In this document: piece after piece, positions 18,330 through 46,510 of the stretch
Position numbering within the stretch: position 1 is the first letter of the stretch
Layout: each line of letters begins with the position of its first letter
Assembly: GCF_032444005.1 (NCBI RefSeq)
Contig: NC_091282.1
Coordinates: forward strand, 353,958,001-354,022,000
DNA length: 64,000 bases
Origin: Ranitomeya imitator
Taxonomy: Eukaryota
Direction: 5' to 3'
The notes under the pieces: generated by a model
The model's input: the letters and a program-made list of their open reading frames with translations, nothing else
Database searches by the model: none
Told to the model about the DNA's origin: nothing
Translations under genes and position numbers: made by a program

Positions 18330-18960
18330 AAGAAGGCAGAAGACTCTGGATGTAAGTATAGAAGCTTTGAAAATGTGTGTCTGTCTCTCACTGCATTCTG
18401 TAATCATGTTTTTTTTCTGTTGCTTCTAGACTGTTTGTTGCTGCCATCCTGATGCCGCCATCTTGGGCAAAGTGCTGCAGTCTATATGCAAGTATAGAAG
18501 GTGTGAAAATATCTGTCTTTGCACTCTGTACAGAATTTTTTTTCCATTCCTTGTAGATTAGGTGCTGCTGTCTTGGTCCCAGTGGTGCAGTCTTTGTCCA
18601 AGTGCTGTCATCCATATGTAAGTATAGAAGATGTGAAAATGTCTGTCTTTTGCACTCTGTACAGATTTTTTTTCTCCATTCTTTGTAGATTGGGTGCTGC
18701 TGTCTTGGTACCAGTGCTGCCGTCTTGGTCCCGCTGCTGCCATCTATGTAAGTATGGAAGCTTTGAAAATGTCTGTCTTTGCACTCTGTACAGAATTTTT
18801 TTTCCATTCCTTGTAGATTAGGTGCTGCTGTCTTGGTGCTGCTCTCTTGGTCCCAGTGCTGCTGTCTTGGTCCCGGTGCTGTTCTTCAGTCCGTCCTGGT
18901 GCTGTGGTTCCTGTTGTGTGGTGCCTGGTGTGTGCTTGGACTACTGCCTGTAATGTAAGT
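18330..18960 (+). repeat. ~130-bp tandem units inside Harbinger, each a mini exon plus a ~70-nt GT/GC-AG intron-like segment
   Basis: gtaagtat...tttccattccttgtag recurs at 18352-18429, 18488-18556, 18618-18688 and 18748-18816. Confidence 0.8.
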
Positions 18961-19066
18961 ATTGTTGTCCAAATTTTTATGTTTTTTTTCTACATTATTT
19001 TGCTTTTACCAAGTTACATGTTTTTTCTCTCTAGTGTATCACTTGACTGCTGCCTGCTCTTACAAC

Positions 19067-21300
19067 ATGTCCTCCACTGAAGGCTCTGAAAGTGGCCATG
19101 ACACCGATTATGTAATCACATTTGATTTACTGATTGGTATGTATTTACTGTCAATACTTGACATGTTAAATCATGTATTTTCTTTACAGGTACCTGACAC
19201 TGCAGAAGAGCAGGAGCAGTCAAGTGGAAATTATTCTTCCCAGGGTCGTCGGCCTCAAGTTGCTGAGGAGAAAAGACGAGGTGTAAGTATCCTTTATCAG
19301 ACTTTTTATTGAATTTGTTGTCATTTTTACTAACAAATTCTTTTTTTGTATTTCATCTATAGGTTCCACAACGTGACATAGAAAATTACCTACTGATTCA
19401 AGCTGTGCAAGAGCGAGCAGCGTTGTGGGACCCCGTGATCGGAATCATTCCGACTCAGTCTTGATCCGACGACTCTGTGTAGAAGTGGCCAGATCGCTGA
19501 TGGATGATTGGGACCATGCAACGCCAAAAGTCAGAAAGGATTTTGGTAAATATTGCTATTTTGGTCGCCTCTGTTTTTCTGTAAATTTTTCTGTCTTAAT
19601 TTTATTTTTCCTCCCCCTTCACAGAGAAAAGAGTAAAAGTTCGTTGGCGTTCTATGAAGGATCACTTCAATAAGTACACAAGAGGAGATTTGGGTTCGAA
19701 GTGGTGCAGCTCGAAAAATCAGAAAATACAAGTATCATAACGAGCTTTCTTTTCTGAAGCCAGCAGTTGCTCAGCGAACGCGAGTATCTTTTTGTGTTTT
19801 TCACTATTTAATTTTTTCTTTTTTGTAATTTTTTTAAAATTTCTTTTCCACACAAAACCTGGAGCACACTGTTGAACCTGGATCTTCCTCTGTTGGAGTA
19901 GCCCCTCATCGACCAGCCAACGAACCGGCATCATCCCAATCATCCACCAGTGATGCAGCAGCCAGGCAGGCTTCACAGGCTGGGGAACAGGAAGCCGGCC
20001 CTTCTGGTTTTCCCCTCTCCCAGCCCTCTGCCACTTTACTTGGGTCTGTTTGGCAGCGGCAGAGGGCCGGGGAGAAGTCAGTCATGCCAGAGTTTACTCA
20101 CTTAAGCTTGGTCTTCCAGGCTGGGATGAAGGCGGTTGTGGATAGGATGGAGAATGGGTTCACTCATGTGAACACACGGTTCCAGGAAGTCCACAAATGC
20201 CTTGACCGCCTGGAAGGCGACCTTAATAGACCCTGCGCGACATTATTTTTCCACTATAGAACGGGGAGTGATGGAAAACCTTAAGGCCCCTTCACACTTA
20301 GCGACGCTGCAGCGATACCGACAACGATCCGGATCGCTGCAGCGTCGCTGTTTGGTCGCTGGAGAGCTGTCACACAGACCGCTCTCCAGCGACCAACGAT
20401 GCCGGTAACCAGGGTAAACATCGGGTAACTAAGCGCAGGGCCGCGCTTAGTAACCCGATGTTTACCCTGGTTACCATGCTAAAAGTAAAAAAAAACAAAC
20501 ACTAGATACTTACCTACCGCTGTCTGTCCTCTGCTCTCCTCCTGTACTGGCTGTGAGCCGGAAAGCAGAGCGGTGACGTCACCGCTCTGCTTTCCGGCTC
20601 ACAGCCAGTACAGGAGGAGAGCAGAGCACAGCGCTGGAGGACAGACAGCGGTAGGTAAGTATCTAGTGTTTGTTTTTTTTACTTTTAGCATGGTAACCAG
20701 GGTAAACATCGGGTTACTAAGCGCGGCCCTGCGCTTAGTTACCCGATGTTTACCCTGGTTACCAGTGAAGACATCGCTGGATCGGTGTCACACATGCCGA
20801 TCCAGCGATGTCAGCAGGAGTCCAGCGACGAAATAAAGTTCTGGACTTTATTCAGCGACCAACGTTCTCCCAGCAGGGGCCTGATCGTTGGTCGCTGTCA
20901 CACATAACGATTTCATTAACGATATCGTTGCTACGTCACAAATAGCAACGATATCGTTAACAATATCGTTGTGTGTGAAGGTACCTTAAGTCCTGATCTC
21001 CTACTGTTCGTGATGAAGGCCTGTCAGGATGCTTATACCGAGGCCATGCAGCGGGGTCCCGATAGCAGCAGGCACAAAGTTGTTTCCGTACAGGGCAACA
21101 AGCTCCAGCACAACATCAGTGGCAGAATCCGCCTGCGCCGACTTACCAAGGGACTTATCTACCACCACCACCGCTGGACATTGCACTTCCAAGAATCCCA
21201 AGGTTCACCATGCAGCCTAGTGCAGAAGACCAGCCATCCACATCTACCACCACACAGCCTAGTGCAGAAGCCCAGCTGTCTGGTTCTGCCATTAAGATGA
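19067..21300 (+). pseudogene. Harbinger Myb/SANT (MADF) gene, multi-exon, frameshifted and MITE-interrupted
   Basis: Exons MSSTEGSESGHDTDY / VPDTAEEQ / LLIQAVQERAALWDP[-1 frameshift]RDRNHSDS / RWRSMKDHFNK..KYKYHNELSFLKP. Confidence 0.8.
20285..20985. mobile_element. 701-bp highly palindromic MITE inserted in the Harbinger MADF gene
   Basis: TTAA on both sides (20281-20284, 20986-20989); termini ggccccttcacac / gtgtgtgaaggtacc; nested internal inverted repeats. Confidence 0.85.
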
Positions 21301-21739
21301 GTGCACATTTCTCCTCTACCAAGGCAGCACCAGAGGAAAAAGAGAGGAAAAAACAGTCACGGAGAAAAAACAGGAATAAATGTTACATGCACCCCCTCAA
21401 CCCTCACCTCCTAATGTGTCTGTGCGTTCTAGTCTGTCCACACCTTCACTCTTCCCCTAATGTGACTTCCCCCAATGTGTCTGACCCAATCCTTCAATTG
21501 TCTTACACTTCCCCCTGTAACAACTTACCCAACCACTCCTAACCTACCATCAAAGCCCGACACCCCCCTGGTCCACCATGTTACTCCCTCCCACAGACCC
21601 CAAAAGTAATTCATTTTTCTTTAAAAAAAAATTGCAATTTTTTATTTATTTCTGCTAGTAAAAAATTTTTTGATTCACAATACCGGTCTCGTTGTGTTTT
21701 CGTTATCTCTTTATTTAACCATGTGTGTATTGTTGAATG

Positions 21740-23000
21740 AAGTACGAACGGGTGTAACAGTTAAGGTGTTTATTATACAAGTTAGATTCAAGGTGTTTTA
21801 TTTACAGGTTAAACCATTTCATCTTGCCATGACACACGTCCACTATCAGAGACAAAATAGGCTGCAAATGTATCCCTCATTTGGGCAACTTCGCCTGCAG
21901 CCCTCAGAGGGTGATGTTGGTAATCCTGCAATGTGGTATTAACAGTTTCCTCAAGTTCAACAACATGTTTTCACAACCTCATCAATTGTATCTATTTTTT
22001 TTATGGCTGTTCCCAAAATGCGTCATTTAAATGCCAGCACACTCCACAGTTCTTCATACTCTTGTCAGTCAGTAGTTGAAAATCCTTTTGTGTGACTCAA
22101 GTCCCGATTTGAGTGCGGTTTTAGGAAGTTGCCACACATTTGAAAGGCCTCATCACCAACAATAACAAACGTCATTGATGGTCCTTCAGTTTTAGGAAGA
22201 GGCTGTGGTGGGGGAATATTAAAATCATTCCCATACAATCGTCCCATGTCAGAGTTTTTGAAAGTCTGAGTCATTTTCTCGTCCAAATGAGACAACGTCA
22301 ACAAATAAACATTCAGCATCCGCAACTGCCATCAGAACAATGGAAAAATATTTTTTATAATTGAAGTACTCAGATCCACTTCCTGCAGGTTTCAGAATCA
22401 GAATTTGGTTTGCAGTCCACAGCCCCCACAAAGTTAGGAAAATTACACATTTCATTGAATTTTGCGGCAATTTGCAGCCACAGTTCAGCTGTGGGTTGGG
22501 GGAGGAAGCTGGCACGCAGAACATCACACAATGCATGGCAAGAGTCTCCAACAATCCCAAAAAGAGTGGACAGTCCAATTCGAAATTAAAAATGTAGAGA
22601 TCTTAAGGTCTCTCCAGTAGCCAGGAATCTGCAGAACAGAGAAAGGAACAAATAAATCAGTACATGGCTTTTCTAACAATAATAGTAACGACAGGTGTTT
22701 GTTCAAAATTAAGTACCTTATAGTCACCAACAGACTTTCCTCAGCAGGAATTGCTCTACATAGTTGGGTGTCCTGCCTGCTGATGTATCCTCGGACACAT
22801 TGCAGCAAATCATTGAAGCTCTGTAGCGACATCCTGGTGCAGTCCAAAAACGTCGCCGGGTTTTCACGAAGCTCTGTGTACTATGCGTGGTAGGCTCCAC
22901 GGCTCTGTCGGAGTTCAACAATGGGGTGTTACCAAAAGCGATGAAGACGTCTTCTCCATCTTTCTCTTCTCCTTTCTTCCTCACAAGCCACAGCGAAAGC
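21740..23000 (-). pseudogene. Harbinger DDE (HARBI1/DDE_Tnp_4-like) transposase
   Basis: RMSLQSFNDLL..ISRQDT..AIPAEESLLVTIRYL; GSEYFNYKKYFSIVLMAVADA; VIVGDEAF. Multiple frameshifts. Confidence 0.88.
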
Positions 23001-29703: not shown

Positions 29704-29800
29704 CTCGCCCCCAGCGCATCCAAACAGAGAAATTTCTAGCACTGTCATCTTCAAGCAGCTGGATCAGATAGTATTTATTGTTATTAAACTGCAGGTTTGT
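29704..29800 (-). CDS. parp2: PARP2 exon (97 bp) containing the WGR signature
   Basis: TNLQFNNNKYYLIQLLEDDSARNFSVWMRWGR; ttttcccag| and |gtgag. Confidence 0.97.
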
Positions 29801-40969: not shown

Positions 40970-42907
40970 AAAAAAGGCCCAAAATCCGTACATTCCAAAA
41001 ACTTTCACAAATACGACCGTATTGAAAGCCCTGACTGCATACAGGGAATATCAGGGCACATAACGGTCTAATGATACATGTTGATTTATGCTTCATAAAA
41101 GCAGTTTGATCACCATTTATGATATTTGAAATGACCTTTTGCCATCAGTATTAACTAATGAAATCAGTCTATATGATATTCAATACATAAGGGATCTTTA
41201 CCAGTTTTTAATAACCGTATAATTATCGCTTCCCTCATCGTTTGAAGGAGCAAACCCATCTCTAAAGAAACGTTCCAACGTTTCTTCAATCTAGCAAACA
41301 CAGCATTTTTAAAGCTAAAACATGCTTTCTTAATGTATCTTCAATTAGAAGCTTTCCATATTTTACAACCTCTTTTTGCCATTTCTCAAAATTTGTATCC
41401 ATGGCAGTAAGATTATAGTGATGCCAGATTCATGTAGGTTGTTTTGCAGTGCTATCTTTTTTTCTGCACACCTCGTAGTGCTAACTTTGCACAAATCCCC
41501 CACCCACCCAAAACACCTGTTTTGCTTTGCCATTTTTTTGCAAACTGTAGCTTTTTATTTTTTGGTCAACAAACTCATGGGGCAATTTTCTTTTTGTGCT
41601 GGACGTATTGACATTTGTGCGTCAGTTTGATTAAAACACGTCACCACTTCTGCATTTATCACCCACTCCTGGTTTTGGCTTACAAATACTGATGTAAAAT
41701 ACTGACCCAATACTGCTAGTGTGACGGCAGCCTAATAGGTTTTATCAGTGCATTCTGCTTCTTTCTCCACTTAGGAGACATATTTTCTTCAGCCTCCTCA
41801 ACTCATCATCCACTCGGAAAAACTACTCAAAACCCACTGCAGTATCATGTTACACATTCTATTATTCTCTATAAAAACTATAACATTTCTTCAATGATGC
41901 TGCTGCTTCTGTCAGTGAGCTAAGGAACGAAGAGCAGAAATCCTTCTATGTGCTATGGGTGGGAGAGATTATACCACCTAGTCTCCTACCACTAGCTGAG
42001 AGTTAACTGCAAATTAGGAAAAAGGCTGCAGAGAAGAAAACTGCAGGATACACGTCAAAATGGCCAGACAGTGTTATTCTTCCATGTACACACACAGCCA
42101 CTTCTGACAAGAGATTAATATAATTACCCTTTAAGCATACTGACAAAATAAAACACAGACACACGTTTTACTTAAAATTATTCATTAAACCATAAAATAA
42201 ATATTTTTCACATAACATGTAAAAAAAATAAGCACCCTCCCTCCCCTGTAAACTTCTCAATTTACTGTAAAAATACACCCCCGATAGCAAACCTACCCTC
42301 CCTACCCATAAGAAACCCCAAAATAATAAATCATTTTCATTGCAAGAACAGCTAAACCTGAAGTGGCCATTGATGCACACAGTCGAGCATTAGTTACCAT
42401 CTTCTTGACCTGAAAAAGGCTGCTTTATAGGCAGCACAGTGAAGGCAGATAACCTACGACTTCAGGTTTAGAGTCCCTTTATACAGAAATGTTTTAAACA
42501 AAGAAAAGCCCCCCAACAAGCCTGCCAACCCAGAGTGATTACATAACCCCCAAACATTTACAAAATGGAGAAAAAAAAAAAAAAGGATTCCCCAGTCACT
42601 TGGGATGCATACCTCCATTCTTTAAATGGAACCAAAATTTTATATATATATATATATATGCAAAAAAAAAAAAAGTGGGAGAAGAGGAATGAAATGAACC
42701 AAAATGGGAGGTAGTGGTGGGAGGAAAATTGATGGGGGAGGGTAAGGGGTTGTATATTACAGTCTGAAACAGGCGAGGAAACACTGGGTATGGAAGGTGG
42801 GAAAACAAGTGTATAAGGAGAAGGAAGAGGAGAGAAAGGCAAATGAATAAGTCACAGAAGGAGGGTATTAGGCTGTTAACGACATAAGAAATTTGTCACA
42901 GGAAGCG

Positions 42908-43391
42908 TTATTGAGTTTGAGGTGACTGGTACTGCGAACTTCCCGTTTGTGGGGTGCACGCCATTCGGAGATTAGCCACCAATGTGTCGACCTCAGGTGG
43001 GTAAAAAGGGGGAAGAAAATACTCTACAGAGCTGAGCACGTAAGCCATAAACCTTGATCGACTAGGTTCAGGCAGCCAACGTATTCGGTCGGCCAGCGTG
43101 CGGCTAAACGCATCAGCATCATCCTCAGCCCAGGTCCTCCGTAATAGGGCTAGAATTTCATCATCCAACTCCTGTGTAATCTTGGCCCTGCTACGGATAA
43201 TACATTTCCCCCCTGTTTTGGATGGTGGCACACGGGGAGGCGGGGGCACAGGTTCAGTACTCTGTCCTGCGATGGCAAAGTCAATGTTTGCCCCCTCAGT
43301 TTCCACAACAGGTGGCACAAAAGAGCCTTCAAGTGGTTCACTCTCCTTTGGCTGGGGCAATCCCACTTCTTTGTCCAGACCTGACGAAGTC
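42908..43391 (-). CDS. MADF-BESS gene exon 4 (to TAA stop), acidic/Pro linker plus BESS-like motif
   Basis: ttttgtaacag| TSSGLDKEVG...EDDADAFSRTLADRIRWLPEPSRSRFMAYVLSSVEYF...QTQ*; phase 2 in, matching exon 3. Confidence 0.8.
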
Positions 43392-44754
43392 CTGTTACAA
43401 AAACGGAAAAAAAAATACATGTTAAAATTGTATACAGTATAAATTGTAGATGTTTCAAGAAGTGCTCCATCTTGTAGCAAATACCGTTTACAAGATTTAC
43501 TAGATGGCAGTCAAAGAAAAATGAACAAACTTACTAGAGTACACTGTGTTCTAGAGTCACACCATTTTCTCATTCTGTCTCAGCTTCAGGAGTAAATGTT
43601 TGGAATCCAGGGGAGACATCCACTGACCATACTTGCCAACTCTCCAGGAACACCTGCGAGGTTCCCACATAAAGAGGAGACCTCTCAGACTCCTGAAAGG
43701 GTTGACAAGTTTCCCAGGAACCATCGAAACCTCCTGGAAAGGAGAGTTGCAGGAAACTACCAACTTTAGCCAGATGCTGTGTCAGCAGACTCAGCCCTAG
43801 TGACAGAAGAAGCACGTTCGGCAGGAGGTTTGGCGCTAGAACTTAAATTTTAGCCTCGGTGGCAGGAATATTTGGTCTTGCTGCGGCGATTGTGTGAAAA
43901 AAGTGACACTCTGGCATCATCTGTTTTGGTTTGAGGTAGGTACAAAGCTGCACCCGTTACCAGCCTTAGTGTGCTATACAATGCAAATCACTGCTCTGCT
44001 TCCAGCATTATAGTCCTGATGCCAGGGTATACTCAAGATTACGGCTCATGAAGAGCCACTAGGTACACCCCTATGTGTCAGTTGTGCTTACAGCACCTTC
44101 TGTACGTGGCATTATTTTATCTACTACATTTCTGAAATGTATGTAGACAGCTATATGTATGGCGACCACGTAAACCCAAATATTAAATGACATCCTCTGG
44201 GATTTCATCATTTCCACATGGCATTTGTTCAAGAATCTGGATGTGGATTTTATTTTGGTGGTGTTGGAAGGGGTCATGTGGTATTTGTGATTGAAACTCT
44301 ATGATGTAGCATGTTCTATATAAAATGTGCGGAGCACAATAAGCAATAATTTTGTGGTGTGTGCCACTTTATATTCCTGTGTGGAATCTCCTTCACGTCC
44401 TTTTTCAAAAGTTGTTAAGTGCCAGAGACATCTGTGGATGGACAGAGCACTCAGTAAACTAGTTTAGAGACAGGCTTGTCAAATCAGTTGCCTATAGAGT
44501 GTGGGAATGAATGAATGTATGTATGTACGTATGAATGTATGTACGTATGTATGGTCTACAGCCAACCAATAAAAGAGGCAATGAATAAGTATTCCAACAA
44601 AGCCCCATCCAAAGCGAGTCGTTGGCAGTGTAAACAAAAGATACCGGAGCAGATTCTGTACTAGCCTATGTTTATTACCATTACATCACAGTATCCACAG
44701 AACATTACATTTTATTACATTCACCCCATTAAATGTTAAATGTACGATGCTTAC

Positions 44755-44908
44755 GGGCAAGGTGGCCTGATTGACCTGAGGAACATCAGCTGATGTAAAT
44801 ATTGGTAACGTTTGCGCTTTGAAGGAGAGGACCCAGTCTTTTCTTCCATTGACATCTCCTTGCGGAACCTGTCGCGCACTGACCGCCATCTATTTTTGAC
44901 ATCCTTCT
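44755..44908 (-). CDS. MADF-BESS gene exon 3 (154 bp)
   Basis: gctttcag| EKDVKNRWRSVRDRFRKEMSMEEKTGSSPSKRKRYQYLHQLMFLRSIRPPCP |gtaagc; MADF helix 3 (RW..VRD.F, Y.Y...L.FL). Confidence 0.85.
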
Positions 44909-45137
44909 CTGAAAGCAGAGTAATAAGAAAAAAAAAGTTATAGAAACTGCATATAAACACCCTATGGAGGTTGTCAAGCTGGAAACAAATGCAATGAAGT
45001 AGTGATTATGATCGAGGTAGATATTTCTCCTGGACTTTATCAGTCATGCCACACTACAGTTTATGCTCATCTAAATGACTGACAGGTTTGACTGGTAATA
45101 GATTGCATAGCAGAAGAAAAAGGGAAAACACACTCAC

Positions 45138-45279
45138 CAATTGCCCCCTGCTCTTTGATGGTGAGCCCATCCCATGAAGGGTACAGGTGGCGGAAGATGC
45201 TTGTCCATGCGTCTTCTCTCGCCTGCCGGTCACTGTATCCCTCTGCTCCAGCATCCCAAAGCTCAGGATGAGTTTCAAC
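45138..45279 (-). CDS. MADF-BESS gene exon 2 (142 bp)
   Basis: aatgcag| VETHPELWDAGAEGYSDRQAREDAWTSIFRHLYPSWDGLTIKEQGAI |gtgagt; first half of MADF (LWD..Y.D...R..AW). Confidence 0.85.
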
Positions 45280-45482
45280 CTGCATTAGAAAAAAAAAAAT
45301 ATGGGGGAAAAAAAAGGAAAAGACCATTACTAGAAATTCCTTGCATCATAAAAAAAGTAAAGTTTGGGAAAAAAAATAAAAACTACTTAAAAATTGTGAT
45401 TGCAGAAATAAATGTAAAATAACACACGGAAATCAATACATGACAAAGATACTCAACAGACCATTCCAATGGCGTTACTCAC

Positions 45483-45515
45483 TTGCTGAATGAGGTGCTT
45501 CACATTTATGGACAT
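45483..45515 (-). CDS. MADF-BESS gene exon 1 (coding part, ATG at 45515)
   Basis: MSINVKHLIQQ followed by |gtgagt donor; phase 0. Confidence 0.7.
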
Positions 45516-46459
45516 CCTTTGGTGGGATGTCAGTTTCACATTTGATTTCTGCAGCTCCCAGTCCTGTTCCCTGAAGCAGTCGGTCATAAAATGCTGCCGT
45601 ATTGCTTCCTGTTATTAATTTGCATGTTTGACAGAGTCAGAAACTTATATGAAACTTCATGTAAAAACCGCATGTTAACACGCACATGGGTTTGCATTTT
45701 TAGTTTTTTCGCCTAATGGGGACAATGATGTGACATTCGGTTCCAGCGATACTTTACACTTAAAATAAGGTTACAGCGAATCCCAGTTTGCTGTAAGAAT
45801 GTCAATTCCAACAGATTTTCTTTTTGATAGAAATAATTTTGTAAATGCATTATTGCAAGGACCAATTATTTACAGTCATATTGGTTAAATGCTTTGTGAA
45901 AATGGCCGCCGAAACAAAGGATGCACTTATTTTTGGCAGGAAACTAATATTATATATATTTTTTTTTAATGGAGATTTTTTTTTTTTTTAAATCACTTTA
46001 TAGTTTGGCCATATTGGAGAAGCTTTATTTCAGTTGCAATGAATAGGAGTTAATTGACCAAGAAATATAGCCCCTGACCTAGACTAGTAAGTTGCAATAA
46101 AAGCACACAGAATTCAAGCTTCAGATCAATAAAAACACCAAAAATTAACGTTTACGTGTTTATTTAGGTCAAGTTTTTATTAGTCAGGCTCATTAAATTG
46201 GAATAGACCCTTTTATTTCGGATTATGTACTTTACTGTTATATGGTTCTTTGTATAGAATCTCAATGTTTTTATGCAATCTGATCTTGCGTAGTTAGTAA
46301 CAATCTGCACTAATCAGCATGTAAGGATCTTACTGAGGTATAACACTAAATCTCATATACAAAAAAAGCAATGTCTTAAAAAAAAATTCCAAACACATGC
46401 AAAATGTAACATTGATCAAAAACGTATGAACACATGTACAGAGAACAGACGTGACTTAC

Positions 46460-46510
46460 CTGGTTCAGCATAACATCGTACACCTCTTCACCTTCACTAT
46501 AAACATGAGC
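46460..46510 (-). CDS. parp2: PARP2 exon (51 bp), start of WGR domain
   Basis: AHVYSEGEEVYDVMLNQ resembles PARP2 AHVYCEGNDVYDVMLNQ; tcttctag| and |gtaagt; phase 0/0. Confidence 0.95.

Follow-up and report, generated by a model that had tools for sequence, protein, structure and literature searches.

The question raised by this locus is whether an intact gene for a MADF-type protein, lying within an intron of PARP2 in the frog Ranitomeya imitator, is the cargo of a transposon, the relic of one or a gene of the host. The window analysed here is the whole 64,000-nucleotide stretch of contig NC_091282.1 (forward-strand positions 353,958,001 to 354,022,000), and all coordinates below are counted within it. 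A preliminary description, made from the letters alone, had proposed four exons on the minus strand, and translation bears this out: the four segments are bounded by GT donors and AG acceptors, join (33 + 142 + 154 + 484 = 813 nt) into an open frame of 270 amino acids plus stop, and yield a product that contains the peptide strings quoted at the time. The coding part of exon 1 (45483..45587, minus strand, 105 nt when counted from the more upstream of two ATG codons) ends in phase 0 and is followed directly by a GTGAGT donor. Exon 2 (45138..45279, minus strand, 142 nt) starts in phase 0 after a long polypyrimidine tract and encodes the first half of the MADF domain; exon 3 (44755..44908, minus strand, 154 nt) supplies the second half, including the RWRSVRDRFRKE helix. 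The coding part of exon 4 (42908..43391, minus strand, 484 nt, with a TAA stop at 42910-42908) encodes a linker, a basic stretch and a C-terminal domain.

The first reading began the protein at the ATG at 45515 (ATG2). An in-frame ATG at 45587 (ATG1), 72 nt further upstream, adds 24 residues, and this N-terminal extension is kept in five species, shortened in Engystomops by a single in-frame deletion of 3 nt. The choice of start codon is ambiguous because the Kozak context is better at 45515 than at 45587; but since the extension is conserved and the Leptodactylus fuscus RefSeq model starts at the ATG equivalent to 45587, the protein is probably 294 residues long and not 270.

Splicing is seen directly in an RNA contig of another frog (L001, 1399 nt, Logan SRR3901720), whose alignment to the window falls into four blocks (45790-45480, 45282-45145, 44909-44756 and 43391-42662) that agree with the four exons give or take a few bases. 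The predicted splicing is thereby borne out in a relative, and the window holds a real, spliced four-exon gene. The contig carries 253 nt 5' of the ATG; its positions 52-361 align to 45790-45480, and a loose colinearity with the genome continues through positions 1-51. By homology to this transcript, the 5' untranslated region (UTR) spans 45588..45840 (minus strand, at least ~250 nt). A 5' UTR colinear with the genome implies that the gene has a promoter of its own, predicted to lie upstream of ~45840, the position to which this UTR reaches. At the other end, a 3' UTR of ~760 nt (42150..42907, minus strand) is delimited by blastn conservation with Leptodactylus, which spans 43419 to 42145. Its last ~190 nt are ~95% identical to Leptodactylus, identity collapses past ~42150, and the same end is also kept in Eleutherodactylus; a probable variant poly(A) signal, AGTAAA, lies at 42172-42167 and is followed by a GT-rich element.

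These boundaries bear on an octamer, ATGCAAAT, which had been offered as a weak promoter hint. Its position (45625-45618) is correct, 31 nt upstream of the ATG at 45587, but the promoter interpretation does not hold: the octamer is no evidence of a promoter because it sits inside the transcribed 5' UTR of L001, where it forms the start of a short upstream reading frame (45584..45625, minus strand, 13 codons) whose TGA overlaps the main ATG as ATGA. The upstream ATG and octamer are kept in four of the five species and are absent in Engystomops.

Expression in R. imitator itself is read from word shares, the spliced transcript being that of a relative. In its RNA runs, 0.30-0.47 of the words that make up the full gene region are present, versus 0.07-0.35 of those of intron 3, and in two of the runs the exon-rich part is represented 4-7 times better than intron 3. 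Among the relatives, one protein (P0004) was found on 14 Logan contigs, and most of the relatives' contigs (these 14 and that of P0007) have the 3' end of intron 1 in place of exon 1; the fully spliced form may thus not be the commonest one.

The location first described, on the same strand within a parp2 intron, is likewise correct. An upstream PARP2 exon (46460..46510, minus strand, ending ...YDVMLNQ; AHVYSEGEEVYDVMLNQ) closes in phase 0 with a GTAAGT donor and is 95% identical to the Leptodactylus PARP2 exon, and a downstream exon (29704..29800, minus strand, TNLQFNNNKYY...; TNLQFNNNKYYLIQLLEDD...) also matches PARP2. With these exons (46510-46460 and 29800-29704) on either side of the MADF gene, the host intron runs from 46459 to 29801 (16.7 kb). 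Comparison by blastn shows the order PARP2 exon, MADF gene, PARP2 exon to be colinear with Leptodactylus. A synteny check in other frogs had been suggested, and reading the loci places the gene in the same PARP2 intron, on the same strand and with the same exon lengths, in four genera (Ranitomeya, Leptodactylus, Engystomops and Eleutherodactylus); the orthologues in the three other hyloid genera are intact (105(102)/142/154/481 nt). Three families (Dendrobatidae, Leptodactylidae and Eleutherodactylidae) are thus covered by locus and a fourth, Hylidae, by a partial gene model from Dendropsophus. The PARP2 loci of Mixophyes (a myobatrachid) and Pyxicephalus (a ranoid) gave no MADF gene by tblastn, HMM or blastn. 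A Leptobrachium PARP2 model with a MADF domain (P0183) was considered as a deeper orthologue and rejected, because its MADF exon differs in sequence and lies in another, earlier intron. We found no literature linking MADF with PARP2. Annotation of the gene is sparse: NCBI annotates it in Leptodactylus, the sole genus among the RefSeq-annotated frogs reached by our protein searches in which it stands as a stand-alone protein, and it is absent from the locus annotation of Engystomops and Eleutherodactylus and from the Ranitomeya PARP2 gene list.

Comparison of the five species shows the gene to be under strong purifying selection. Pairwise dN/dS, which the preliminary description had named as a check, falls within 0.07-0.11 for each of the ten pairs (bootstrap upper limits all under 0.19, dS of about 0.42-0.66), far from the value of 1 expected without constraint on the protein. 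A C-terminal stretch of 89 amino acids is invariant in all five, every coding indel is a multiple of 3, and the introns are largely unalignable between species while the coding sequence stays open. Parts of the locus outside the coding sequence (5' UTR, intron 1 and the end of the 3' UTR) are kept as well, as would be expected if the frame were that of a conserved but non-functional relic or annotation artefact, preserved by chance or by overlapping regulatory constraint within the PARP2 intron. Such a reading is very improbable: synonymous sites are roughly tenfold more diverged than non-synonymous ones in all ten pairs, the indels respect the frame, splice sites and exon lengths are conserved, and a spliced, apparently mature mRNA contig exists.

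Searches for the remainder of a transposon agree with the earlier report of no DDE partner and no terminal inverted repeats (TIRs). tblastn with a frog Harbinger transposase (from Engystomops) is blank across the 16.7-kb intron and equally so over the orthologous loci read from Leptodactylus, Engystomops and Eleutherodactylus. Inverted repeats around 41000-46460 consist only of low-complexity A/T arms, and after a dS of ~0.5 old TIRs would be unrecognisable anyway. Neither an adjacent DDE_Tnp_4 (Plant_tran) gene nor TIRs with a 3-bp target-site duplication, both marks of an autonomous PIF/Harbinger element, accompany the gene. Elsewhere in the window, the sole match of the Engystomops transposase lies at 21960-22630, in another intron, and a decayed Harbinger lies 20 kb from the MADF gene.

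Related genes nonetheless point to such an element as the source. A full-length relative in Engystomops (P0016) belongs to a 7.6-kb unit present in two copies that are 99.7% identical (L007/L008), and this unit carries a convergent DDE_Tnp_4/Plant_tran gene; a MADF gene of this type aligns to the window gene over its full length (31% identity, E 3e-32). Other relatives occur as 13-17 near-identical proteins within one genome. Phylogenetically, the orthologues group tightly together on short branches (support 100/99; branch lengths 0.007-0.074 versus a median of 0.68) next to multi-copy Harbinger MADF lineages, and the closest multi-copy relatives are the MADF genes of young frog Harbinger elements. 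Copy number appears to differ: above 77% identity our protein searches returned only orthologue clusters, and no paralogue above 50% identity appeared in these searches or among 50%-identity cluster representatives, this coverage being of protein sequences. Within the window, tblastn of the protein gave no second copy, and the stretch at 19067-21300, earlier called another MADF gene, is too distant to match at E≤10. The absence of near-identical proteins suggests that the gene is single-copy in its genome.

It could be argued that the gene is the ordinary cargo of a young or recent transposon, either a Harbinger that lacks its transposase or a MADF-only non-autonomous element, and is intact only through youth; the family is full of young multi-copy frog Harbinger MADF genes, and the window contains the decayed Harbinger 20 kb from the gene. 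The probability of this is close to nil. The orthologous locus is occupied in three other hyloid genera at dS ~0.5, the coding sequence is open at dN/dS ~0.1 between largely unalignable introns, near-identical paralogues are missing from the protein searches, and neither TIRs nor a transposase remnant were found. Of the two possibilities first put forward, synteny and selection reject a MADF-only mobile element, and a co-opted DNA-binding gene is supported by the synteny, the dN/dS of ~0.1, the spliced transcript in a relative, the lack of transposase and TIRs and the Harbinger relatives. Because the gene is intact and conserved in one PARP2 intron in all hyloids examined (four families, Hylidae by the partial model), we read it as a hyloid-specific host gene and not as a live or decaying transposon.

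The encoded protein is modular, and is modelled as a MADF domain, a disordered acidic and proline-rich linker, a basic stretch and a four-helix BESS-like C-terminal domain. Its description as a MADF-BESS protein stands in the first part: the HMM search that had been proposed for MADF (PF10545) gives a match with window exon 3 alone (MADF_DNA_bdg, E 5.1e-07, 30.4 bits versus a cut-off of 22), and the full model is matched above gathering score by an orthologue 93% identical to the window protein (P0001; 63.9 bits, E 1.8e-17, model positions 1-84) and by another (P0003; 60.2 bits, E 2.6e-16). A trihelix with conserved tryptophans completes the MADF assignment; across 30 family members, W60 and W90 never vary, and W43 is near-invariant (kept in at least 90%). 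The BESS part does not stand as a Pfam hit. The BESS profile (PF02944) has no match on P0001 (E≤10) or P0003 (E≤1), and window exon 4 matches no Pfam family. Four of 30 relatives do match BESS (best 31.5 bits, E 1.5e-07), at columns aligned to EDDADAFSRTLADRIRWLPEP..., and hhalign of an orthologue C terminus against these BESS-bearing relatives gives 95.3% probability (E 2.3e-08). The C-terminal domain is, judged by profile comparison, a BESS-like homologue and not a Pfam BESS match. In an AF2 model, residues 29-130 (MADF) are helical with pLDDT above 90 and the C-terminal helices cover 201-278 with pLDDT of 83-92. The best structural match of this model is Drosophila Adf-1 (residues 29-256), followed by NAIF1, MYPOP and MSANTD4; a fold search of the PDB gave no match below E=1.

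We consider it very likely that this is a single-copy host gene of hyloid frogs, domesticated from a PIF/Harbinger MADF gene within the PARP2 intron. Measured against published criteria for domesticated genes (PMC9392472), it has syntenic orthologues, purifying selection, processed mRNA (the spliced L001, the P0004 contigs and the word shares) and demonstrable transposon-gene relatives (the P0016 element and the tree). A PIF/Harbinger element would have inserted into the PARP2 intron, its Myb/SANT-like 'ORF1' MADF gene being kept while the rest of the element decayed. By homology, the protein may be an adaptor that binds specific DNA sequences: DNA contact would fall to the N-terminal MADF trihelix and nuclear import to the basic stretch, and the invariant four-helix BESS-like domain would engage a conserved protein partner. 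Candidates for this partner are co-factors of transcription or chromatin and transposases of the Harbinger type, HARBI1 among them. The same division of labour is known from Harbinger Myb-like proteins, their derivative NAIF1 and Drosophila MADF-BESS factors such as Adf-1. As constraint is stronger on the C-terminal than on the DNA-binding domain, partner binding may be the core selected function.

Domestication of a Harbinger MADF gene is a known kind of event, and this gene is a new case. NAIF1 and MSANTD1-4 likewise derive from the second, DNA-binding gene of a PIF/Harbinger element, are single-copy (as the window gene probably is), syntenic and under purifying selection without TIRs or an adjacent transposase, and combine an N-terminal trihelix with helices towards the C terminus; two of them, NAIF1 and MSANTD4, rank among the top structural matches of the window protein. 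They differ in domain type (Myb_DNA-bind_4/5 rather than Pfam MADF, so that the similarity is at fold level only), in setting, as the window gene is nested on the same strand in a host intron, and in age. The NAIF1/MSANTD genes go back to the root of the jawed vertebrates or of the sarcopterygians, some 430-500 My ago (PMC9392472), whereas the window gene is restricted to hyloid frogs, the corresponding locus of Mixophyes and Pyxicephalus having none. Drosophila Adf-1, Dip3 and others share the arrangement of an N-terminal MADF domain with a BESS-type helical interaction motif near the C terminus. That MADF stems from PIF/Harbinger is generally accepted (as cited in PMC10027918), and PIF-derived MADF partner genes have been co-domesticated in insects (PMC9710019). 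The window gene differs from these in being an independent vertebrate event with no identified co-domesticated transposase partner, and from the Drosophila MADF-BESS proteins in a C-terminal domain that misses the Pfam BESS threshold and continues for ~40 residues past the BESS motif (SVEYFLPPFYPPEVDTLVANLRMACT). The MADF genes of active frog Harbinger elements, such as the 7.6-kb Engystomops unit, are alignable over the full length, multi-exonic, of the same domain order and of the same frog-wide family; unlike the window gene, which is probably single-copy and has very short branches and no transposase, they are multi-copy and lie tail-to-tail with a DDE_Tnp_4 gene.

NAIF1 and MSANTD1-4, the vertebrate domestications of the Harbinger DNA-binding gene known so far, are all of that age (430-500 My, PMC9392472), so that the steps of co-option are no longer visible in them. 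The window gene would be a much younger Harbinger MADF domestication, in one frog superfamily and with active Harbinger relatives in the same genomes, and this makes several properties testable: whether the protein recognizes Harbinger ends and binds Harbinger-type transposases, whether it is a repressor of its Harbinger relatives or a new transcription factor, and why its C-terminal domain is frozen (89 invariant residues) while the DNA-binding domain drifts. Most frog annotations miss the gene. Its same-strand nesting in PARP2 also provides a natural setting in which to ask how a host gene copes with, or exploits, a strong acceptor and a poly(A) site in its interior.

That nesting allows a different product. 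The MADF exons could serve mainly as alternative 3'-terminal exons of PARP2, yielding a WWE-WWE-MADF-BESS-like chimera that tethers a PAR-reading module to DNA, with the stand-alone transcript secondary. From the ...YDVMLNQ exon (phase 0) two routes exist, one to MADF exon 2 (phase 0), whose acceptor has a strong polypyrimidine tract, and one to an AG dinucleotide at 45606..45607 (minus strand), 21 nt upstream of ATG1, from which the frame continues with no stop. Both joins are in frame in all five species, although phase compatibility alone has a one-in-three chance; the AG is also kept in all five, but makes a weak acceptor because the tract upstream is purine-rich. Conservation of the 24 residues upstream of ATG2 speaks for such joins, and chimeras are encoded by the Engystomops GenBank models P0009 (joined to exon 2) and P0170 (joined at -21) and by the Dendropsophus model P0008 (also joined at -21), the latter two reading ...YDVMLNQ directly followed by EA(I/L)RQHFMT(D/E)CF... 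The Engystomops models were built by a pipeline drawing on both homology and transcripts (PMC10794172), which favours them, but the Dendropsophus model looks ab initio because it runs into intron 2, and the RefSeq PARP2 models of Leptodactylus, Engystomops and Eleutherodactylus include no such isoform. A parallel is found in the closest paralogue, from Hyla sarda, where the NCBI 'BCCIP isoform X1' joins BCCIP N-terminal exons to the same exon-2 boundary. RNA points the other way. L001, the sole full-length transcript seen, is not a fusion, because its 253-nt 5' UTR runs colinear through the -21 AG; no Logan contig encodes a fusion, and P0172 reads from the PARP2 exon into the intron.

We accordingly regard PARP2 as the main source of MADF transcripts as quite improbable, and prefer a domesticated gene with its own transcript. 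The broader proposal, that hyloids regularly make a PARP2::MADF chimera in which the two WWE domains of PARP2, which read poly-ADP-ribose, are joined together with the first part of its WGR region to the MADF and BESS-like modules, is conceivable but unlikely. If it were true, the nested gene would be a regulated gene trap that truncates PARP2 and creates a DNA-tethered PAR reader, and the exon-2 capture by BCCIP in Hyla would be independent, making this MADF lineage a recurrent source of fusions with two DNA-repair-linked genes. TSNARE1, listed as a putative Harbinger Myb-like-derived gene (PMC9392472), and exon-capture fusions in general resemble the locus in a geometry that lets host exons splice in frame to a transposon-derived DNA-binding module, and fusion models exist both here and for the Hyla paralogue in BCCIP. 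They differ in that the fusion here is a gene prediction only, the form seen being a stand-alone transcript with its own 5' UTR. The WWE domains of frog PARP2 were also considered as a sign of a mis-joined gene model; this was rejected, because PARP2 as a rule carries WWE domains in fishes, amphibians, reptiles, monotremes and marsupials.

The nested gene is a conserved, spliced and selected protein-coding gene whose product combines a MADF domain with a helical domain that is BESS-like. Re-read from the sequence, its four minus-strand exons (45515–45483, 33 nt; 45279–45138, 142 nt; 44908–44755, 154 nt; 43391–42908, 484 nt to the TAA) have GT and AG at their borders and together give an 813-nt frame (270 codons plus TAA), whose translation contains the peptides quoted in the preliminary description. 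The upstream PARP2 exon (...AHVYSEGEEVYDVMLNQ, 46510–46460, minus), which matches many PARP2 proteins, and the following one (TNLQFNNNKYYLIQLLEDD..., 29800–29704, minus) flank the gene, confirming that it is nested in a 16.7 kb PARP2 intron whose strand host and guest share. N-terminal WWE domains are found in PARP2 of frogs, fishes, crocodile, turtles, monotremes and marsupials, and are missing from eutherian PARP2; because WWE-bearing PARP2 is this widespread among non-eutherian vertebrates, the 736-aa frog PARP2 models are not mis-joined.

A protein search with exon 4 retrieves P0001 (269 aa, 93% identity), encoded without introns on a 1,399-nt Logan RNA contig from another frog (L001, SRR3901720). 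L001 maps onto the window as four blocks (45790–45480, 45282–45145, 44909–44756 and 43391–42662), within a few bases of the exons. Its open frame starts 72 nt 5′ of ATG 45515, which had been taken as the start; an equivalent in-frame ATG lies at 45587, and five species share the 24 residues it adds (MTDCFREQDWELQKSNVKLTSHQR), apart from a 3-nt deletion in Engystomops, so the protein is probably 294 aa long, with the upstream ATG its probable start. Both ATGs may be in use, since 45515 has A at −3 and 45587 has T there and shares bases with the stop codon of a short uORF (MQINNRKQYGSIL, 45584–45625, minus, ending in ATGA). This uORF, conserved in four of five species and lost in Engystomops, may shift initiation onto the second ATG. 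The octamer earlier offered as a promoter hint (45625–45618) gives no such indication, because it is itself transcribed: it opens the uORF within the 5′UTR of L001. That 5′UTR, at least ~250 nt long, is colinear with the genome, which suggests a transcription start within the PARP2 intron. Downstream, conservation with Leptodactylus extends ~760 nt beyond the stop codon. The final ~190 nt of the 3′UTR are ~95% identical between poison frog and Leptodactylus (window 42150–42340; L002 13440–13620) and 87% identical to Eleutherodactylus (L004 31899–32134); they exceed the conservation of synonymous sites by a wide margin, suggesting an element of post-transcriptional control. Identity stops abruptly after AGTAAA (42172–42167) and a GT-rich run, making a poly(A) site likely near 42150.

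In RNA runs of the window's own species, 0.30–0.47 of sampled words from 42800–45700 are present and just 0.07–0.35 of those from intron 3; in two runs (X3 and X7) coverage of the exon-rich remainder is 4–7 times that of intron 3. These word shares, as distinct from junction evidence, are consistent with a spliced mRNA. Among relatives, the fully spliced form is less common than contigs in which the end of intron 1 is kept (P0004, 14 Logan contigs; P0007). In the latter the intron 1 3′ end (…ATGCAG/GTTGAA) replaces exon 1, implying intron-1 retention or a start site within intron 1; an ATG at −6 of this acceptor is conserved in three of four genomes.

The P0001 cluster includes a Leptodactylus fuscus RefSeq protein (XP_075133417, P0003, 293 aa), whose gene lies on the same strand within a WWE-WGR-PARP gene (L002), colinear with the window through PARP2 exon, MADF gene and following PARP2 exon. 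We compared whole PARP2 loci from four further frogs: Engystomops, Eleutherodactylus coqui, Mixophyes fleayi and Pyxicephalus adspersus. Intact orthologues occupy the same intron in Engystomops (Leptodactylidae; L003 38616–43062, 292 aa) and E. coqui (Eleutherodactylidae; L004 28601–31039, 293 aa), so that synteny holds in these two and Leptodactylus. Coding exon lengths are 105/142/154/484 in the window, 105/142/154/481 in Leptodactylus and E. coqui, and 102/142/154/481 in Engystomops. The gene is largely absent from annotations: the Engystomops and E. coqui orthologues are unlisted as genes in the NCBI-annotated locus tables, and an older Engystomops GenBank annotation has the orthologue solely as PARP2 fusion models. 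A partial Dendropsophus model (P0008) places the gene in Hylidae. The same intron in M. fleayi (Myobatrachidae) and P. adspersus (Ranoidea) holds no trace by tblastn, orthologue and family HMMs or sensitive blastn. The simplest reading is that the gene was acquired on the hyloid stem lineage once myobatrachids had split off, though these absences may instead reflect loss in the two outgroups. Pairwise dS is star-like (0.42–0.66), which fits the radiation of hyloid families around the end of the Cretaceous.

Purifying selection is evident throughout, with dN/dS far from 1 at 0.07–0.11 in all ten orthologue pairs (Nei–Gojobori; bootstrap upper limits below 0.19). Values are about 0.08 in the MADF domain, 0.13–0.24 in the linker and 0.03–0.13 in the C-terminal third. 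An 89-residue run (GGKCIIRSRAK...LRMACTPQ) shows no amino-acid change among the five species at a synonymous divergence of 0.28–0.47; introns 2 and 3 align only patchily between window and Leptodactylus.

Pfam supports the MADF half of the MADF-BESS assignment, with MADF_DNA_bdg matched across the whole model in P0001 (E 1.8e-17) and in window exon 3 by itself (E 5e-07). Pfam BESS does not match the nested-gene protein; it matches 4 of 30 aligned relatives (best E 1.5e-07) at columns aligned to EDDADAFSRTLADRIRWLPEP..., and profile comparison shows the orthologue C-terminus to be homologous to these BESS-bearing proteins (95.3% probability, E 2.3e-08). AlphaFold (mean pLDDT 76.7) confidently models the MADF trihelix (29–130) and four helices (201–278), with a disordered linker between them. 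Among reviewed proteins the best structural match is Drosophila Adf-1 (residues 29–256), then NAIF1, MYPOP and MSANTD4; solved structures gave no match. By analogy with these families, the MADF domain would bind specific DNA, the basic stretch would drive import into the nucleus, and the C-terminal domain would engage a conserved partner, the role BESS plays in Drosophila factors; the Harbinger Myb-like protein binds its own transposase and NAIF1 binds HARBI1 (Sinzelle et al. 2008, as cited in PMC9392472). The lack of change in the C-terminal domain suggests selection chiefly for partner binding.

An exhaustive profile-free search gave 909 relatives at E ≤ 0.001 (227 at E ≤ 1e-10); every one source-checked is a frog protein, and several clusters comprise 13–17 near-identical proteins across chromosomes of one species. 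P0016 from Engystomops gives a full-length alignment. It belongs to a 7.6 kb unit present in two copies, 99.7% identical, on two chromosomes (L007 9639–17231; L008 9639–17229), in which a 4-kb multi-exon MADF gene lies tail to tail with a convergent DDE_Tnp_4/Plant_tran gene: a young Harbinger element, probably recently active. A maximum-likelihood tree unites the five orthologues in a tight clade (100/99), with terminal branches of 0.007–0.074 against a family median of 0.68. Their sister is a BCCIP-nested Hyla sarda gene (94/84), next comes a Spea 'Adf-1-like' gene, and the group sits beside multi-copy lineages. As first described, the nested gene has no DDE partner or TIRs: neither the host intron nor three orthologous loci hold a transposase remnant, and no TIRs are visible around it. 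The next PARP2 intron does hold a decayed Harbinger (18900–22900), with minus-strand transposase remnants (21960–22630, 30–42% identity to the Engystomops transposase), more N-terminal-like ORFs up to 22847 and weak plus-strand MADF-like ORFs (~19400–19700); its MADF is too distant to match the nested gene by tblastn (E ≤ 10). Synteny, purifying selection, expression, lost transposon hallmarks and Harbinger relatives, the grounds on which NAIF1 and MSANTD1–4 were recognized as domesticated (PMC9392472), all favour the co-option proposed earlier and support a hyloid-frog-specific domesticated Harbinger MADF gene within PARP2. A 1,136-aa Anomaloglossus baeobatrachus protein (P0010, 39% identity) has this family's MADF unit repeated three times in tandem after a duplicated frog-type N-terminal domain (MDRDRDKMAERILHLTLEILF…) and ends in the same BESS-like domain.

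A selected PARP2::MADF fusion protein is unlikely, although occasional chimeric transcripts are plausible. The upstream PARP2 exon and MADF exon 1 both end in phase 0, and an in-frame AG 21 nt 5′ of ATG 45587 is conserved, but as an acceptor it is purine-rich. Engystomops GenBank models P0009 and P0170 code for both possible chimeras, in an annotation built with homology and transcript evidence (PMC10794172), and the Dendropsophus model codes for one; against these, RefSeq has no such PARP2 isoform, the sole full-length transcript seen (L001) is not a fusion, and none occurs among the Logan proteins searched. The closest paralogue, from Hyla sarda (XP_056388974, P0011; 40–43% identity depending on alignment method, same C-terminal tail), offers a parallel: it sits within BCCIP and carries the NCBI annotation 'BCCIP isoform X1', sharing the BCCIP start, with BCCIP N-terminal exons joined at the same exon-2 boundary (…GIKKLLKQ/VEAHPVLWD). 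The possibility of a chimera in PARP2 merits testing. A PARP2 contig (P0172, Logan, 332 aa) runs from exon …YDVMLNQ directly into the host intron, which indicates intron retention or intronic polyadenylation there. In Leptobrachium leishanense, an Ensembl-type PARP2 model (P0183, UniRef A0A8C5Q2Z2) includes an unrelated MADF-like exon (…LISAVEQYPALWDTADNDYKEK…) from an earlier intron, another transposon MADF exon pulled into a PARP2 gene model.
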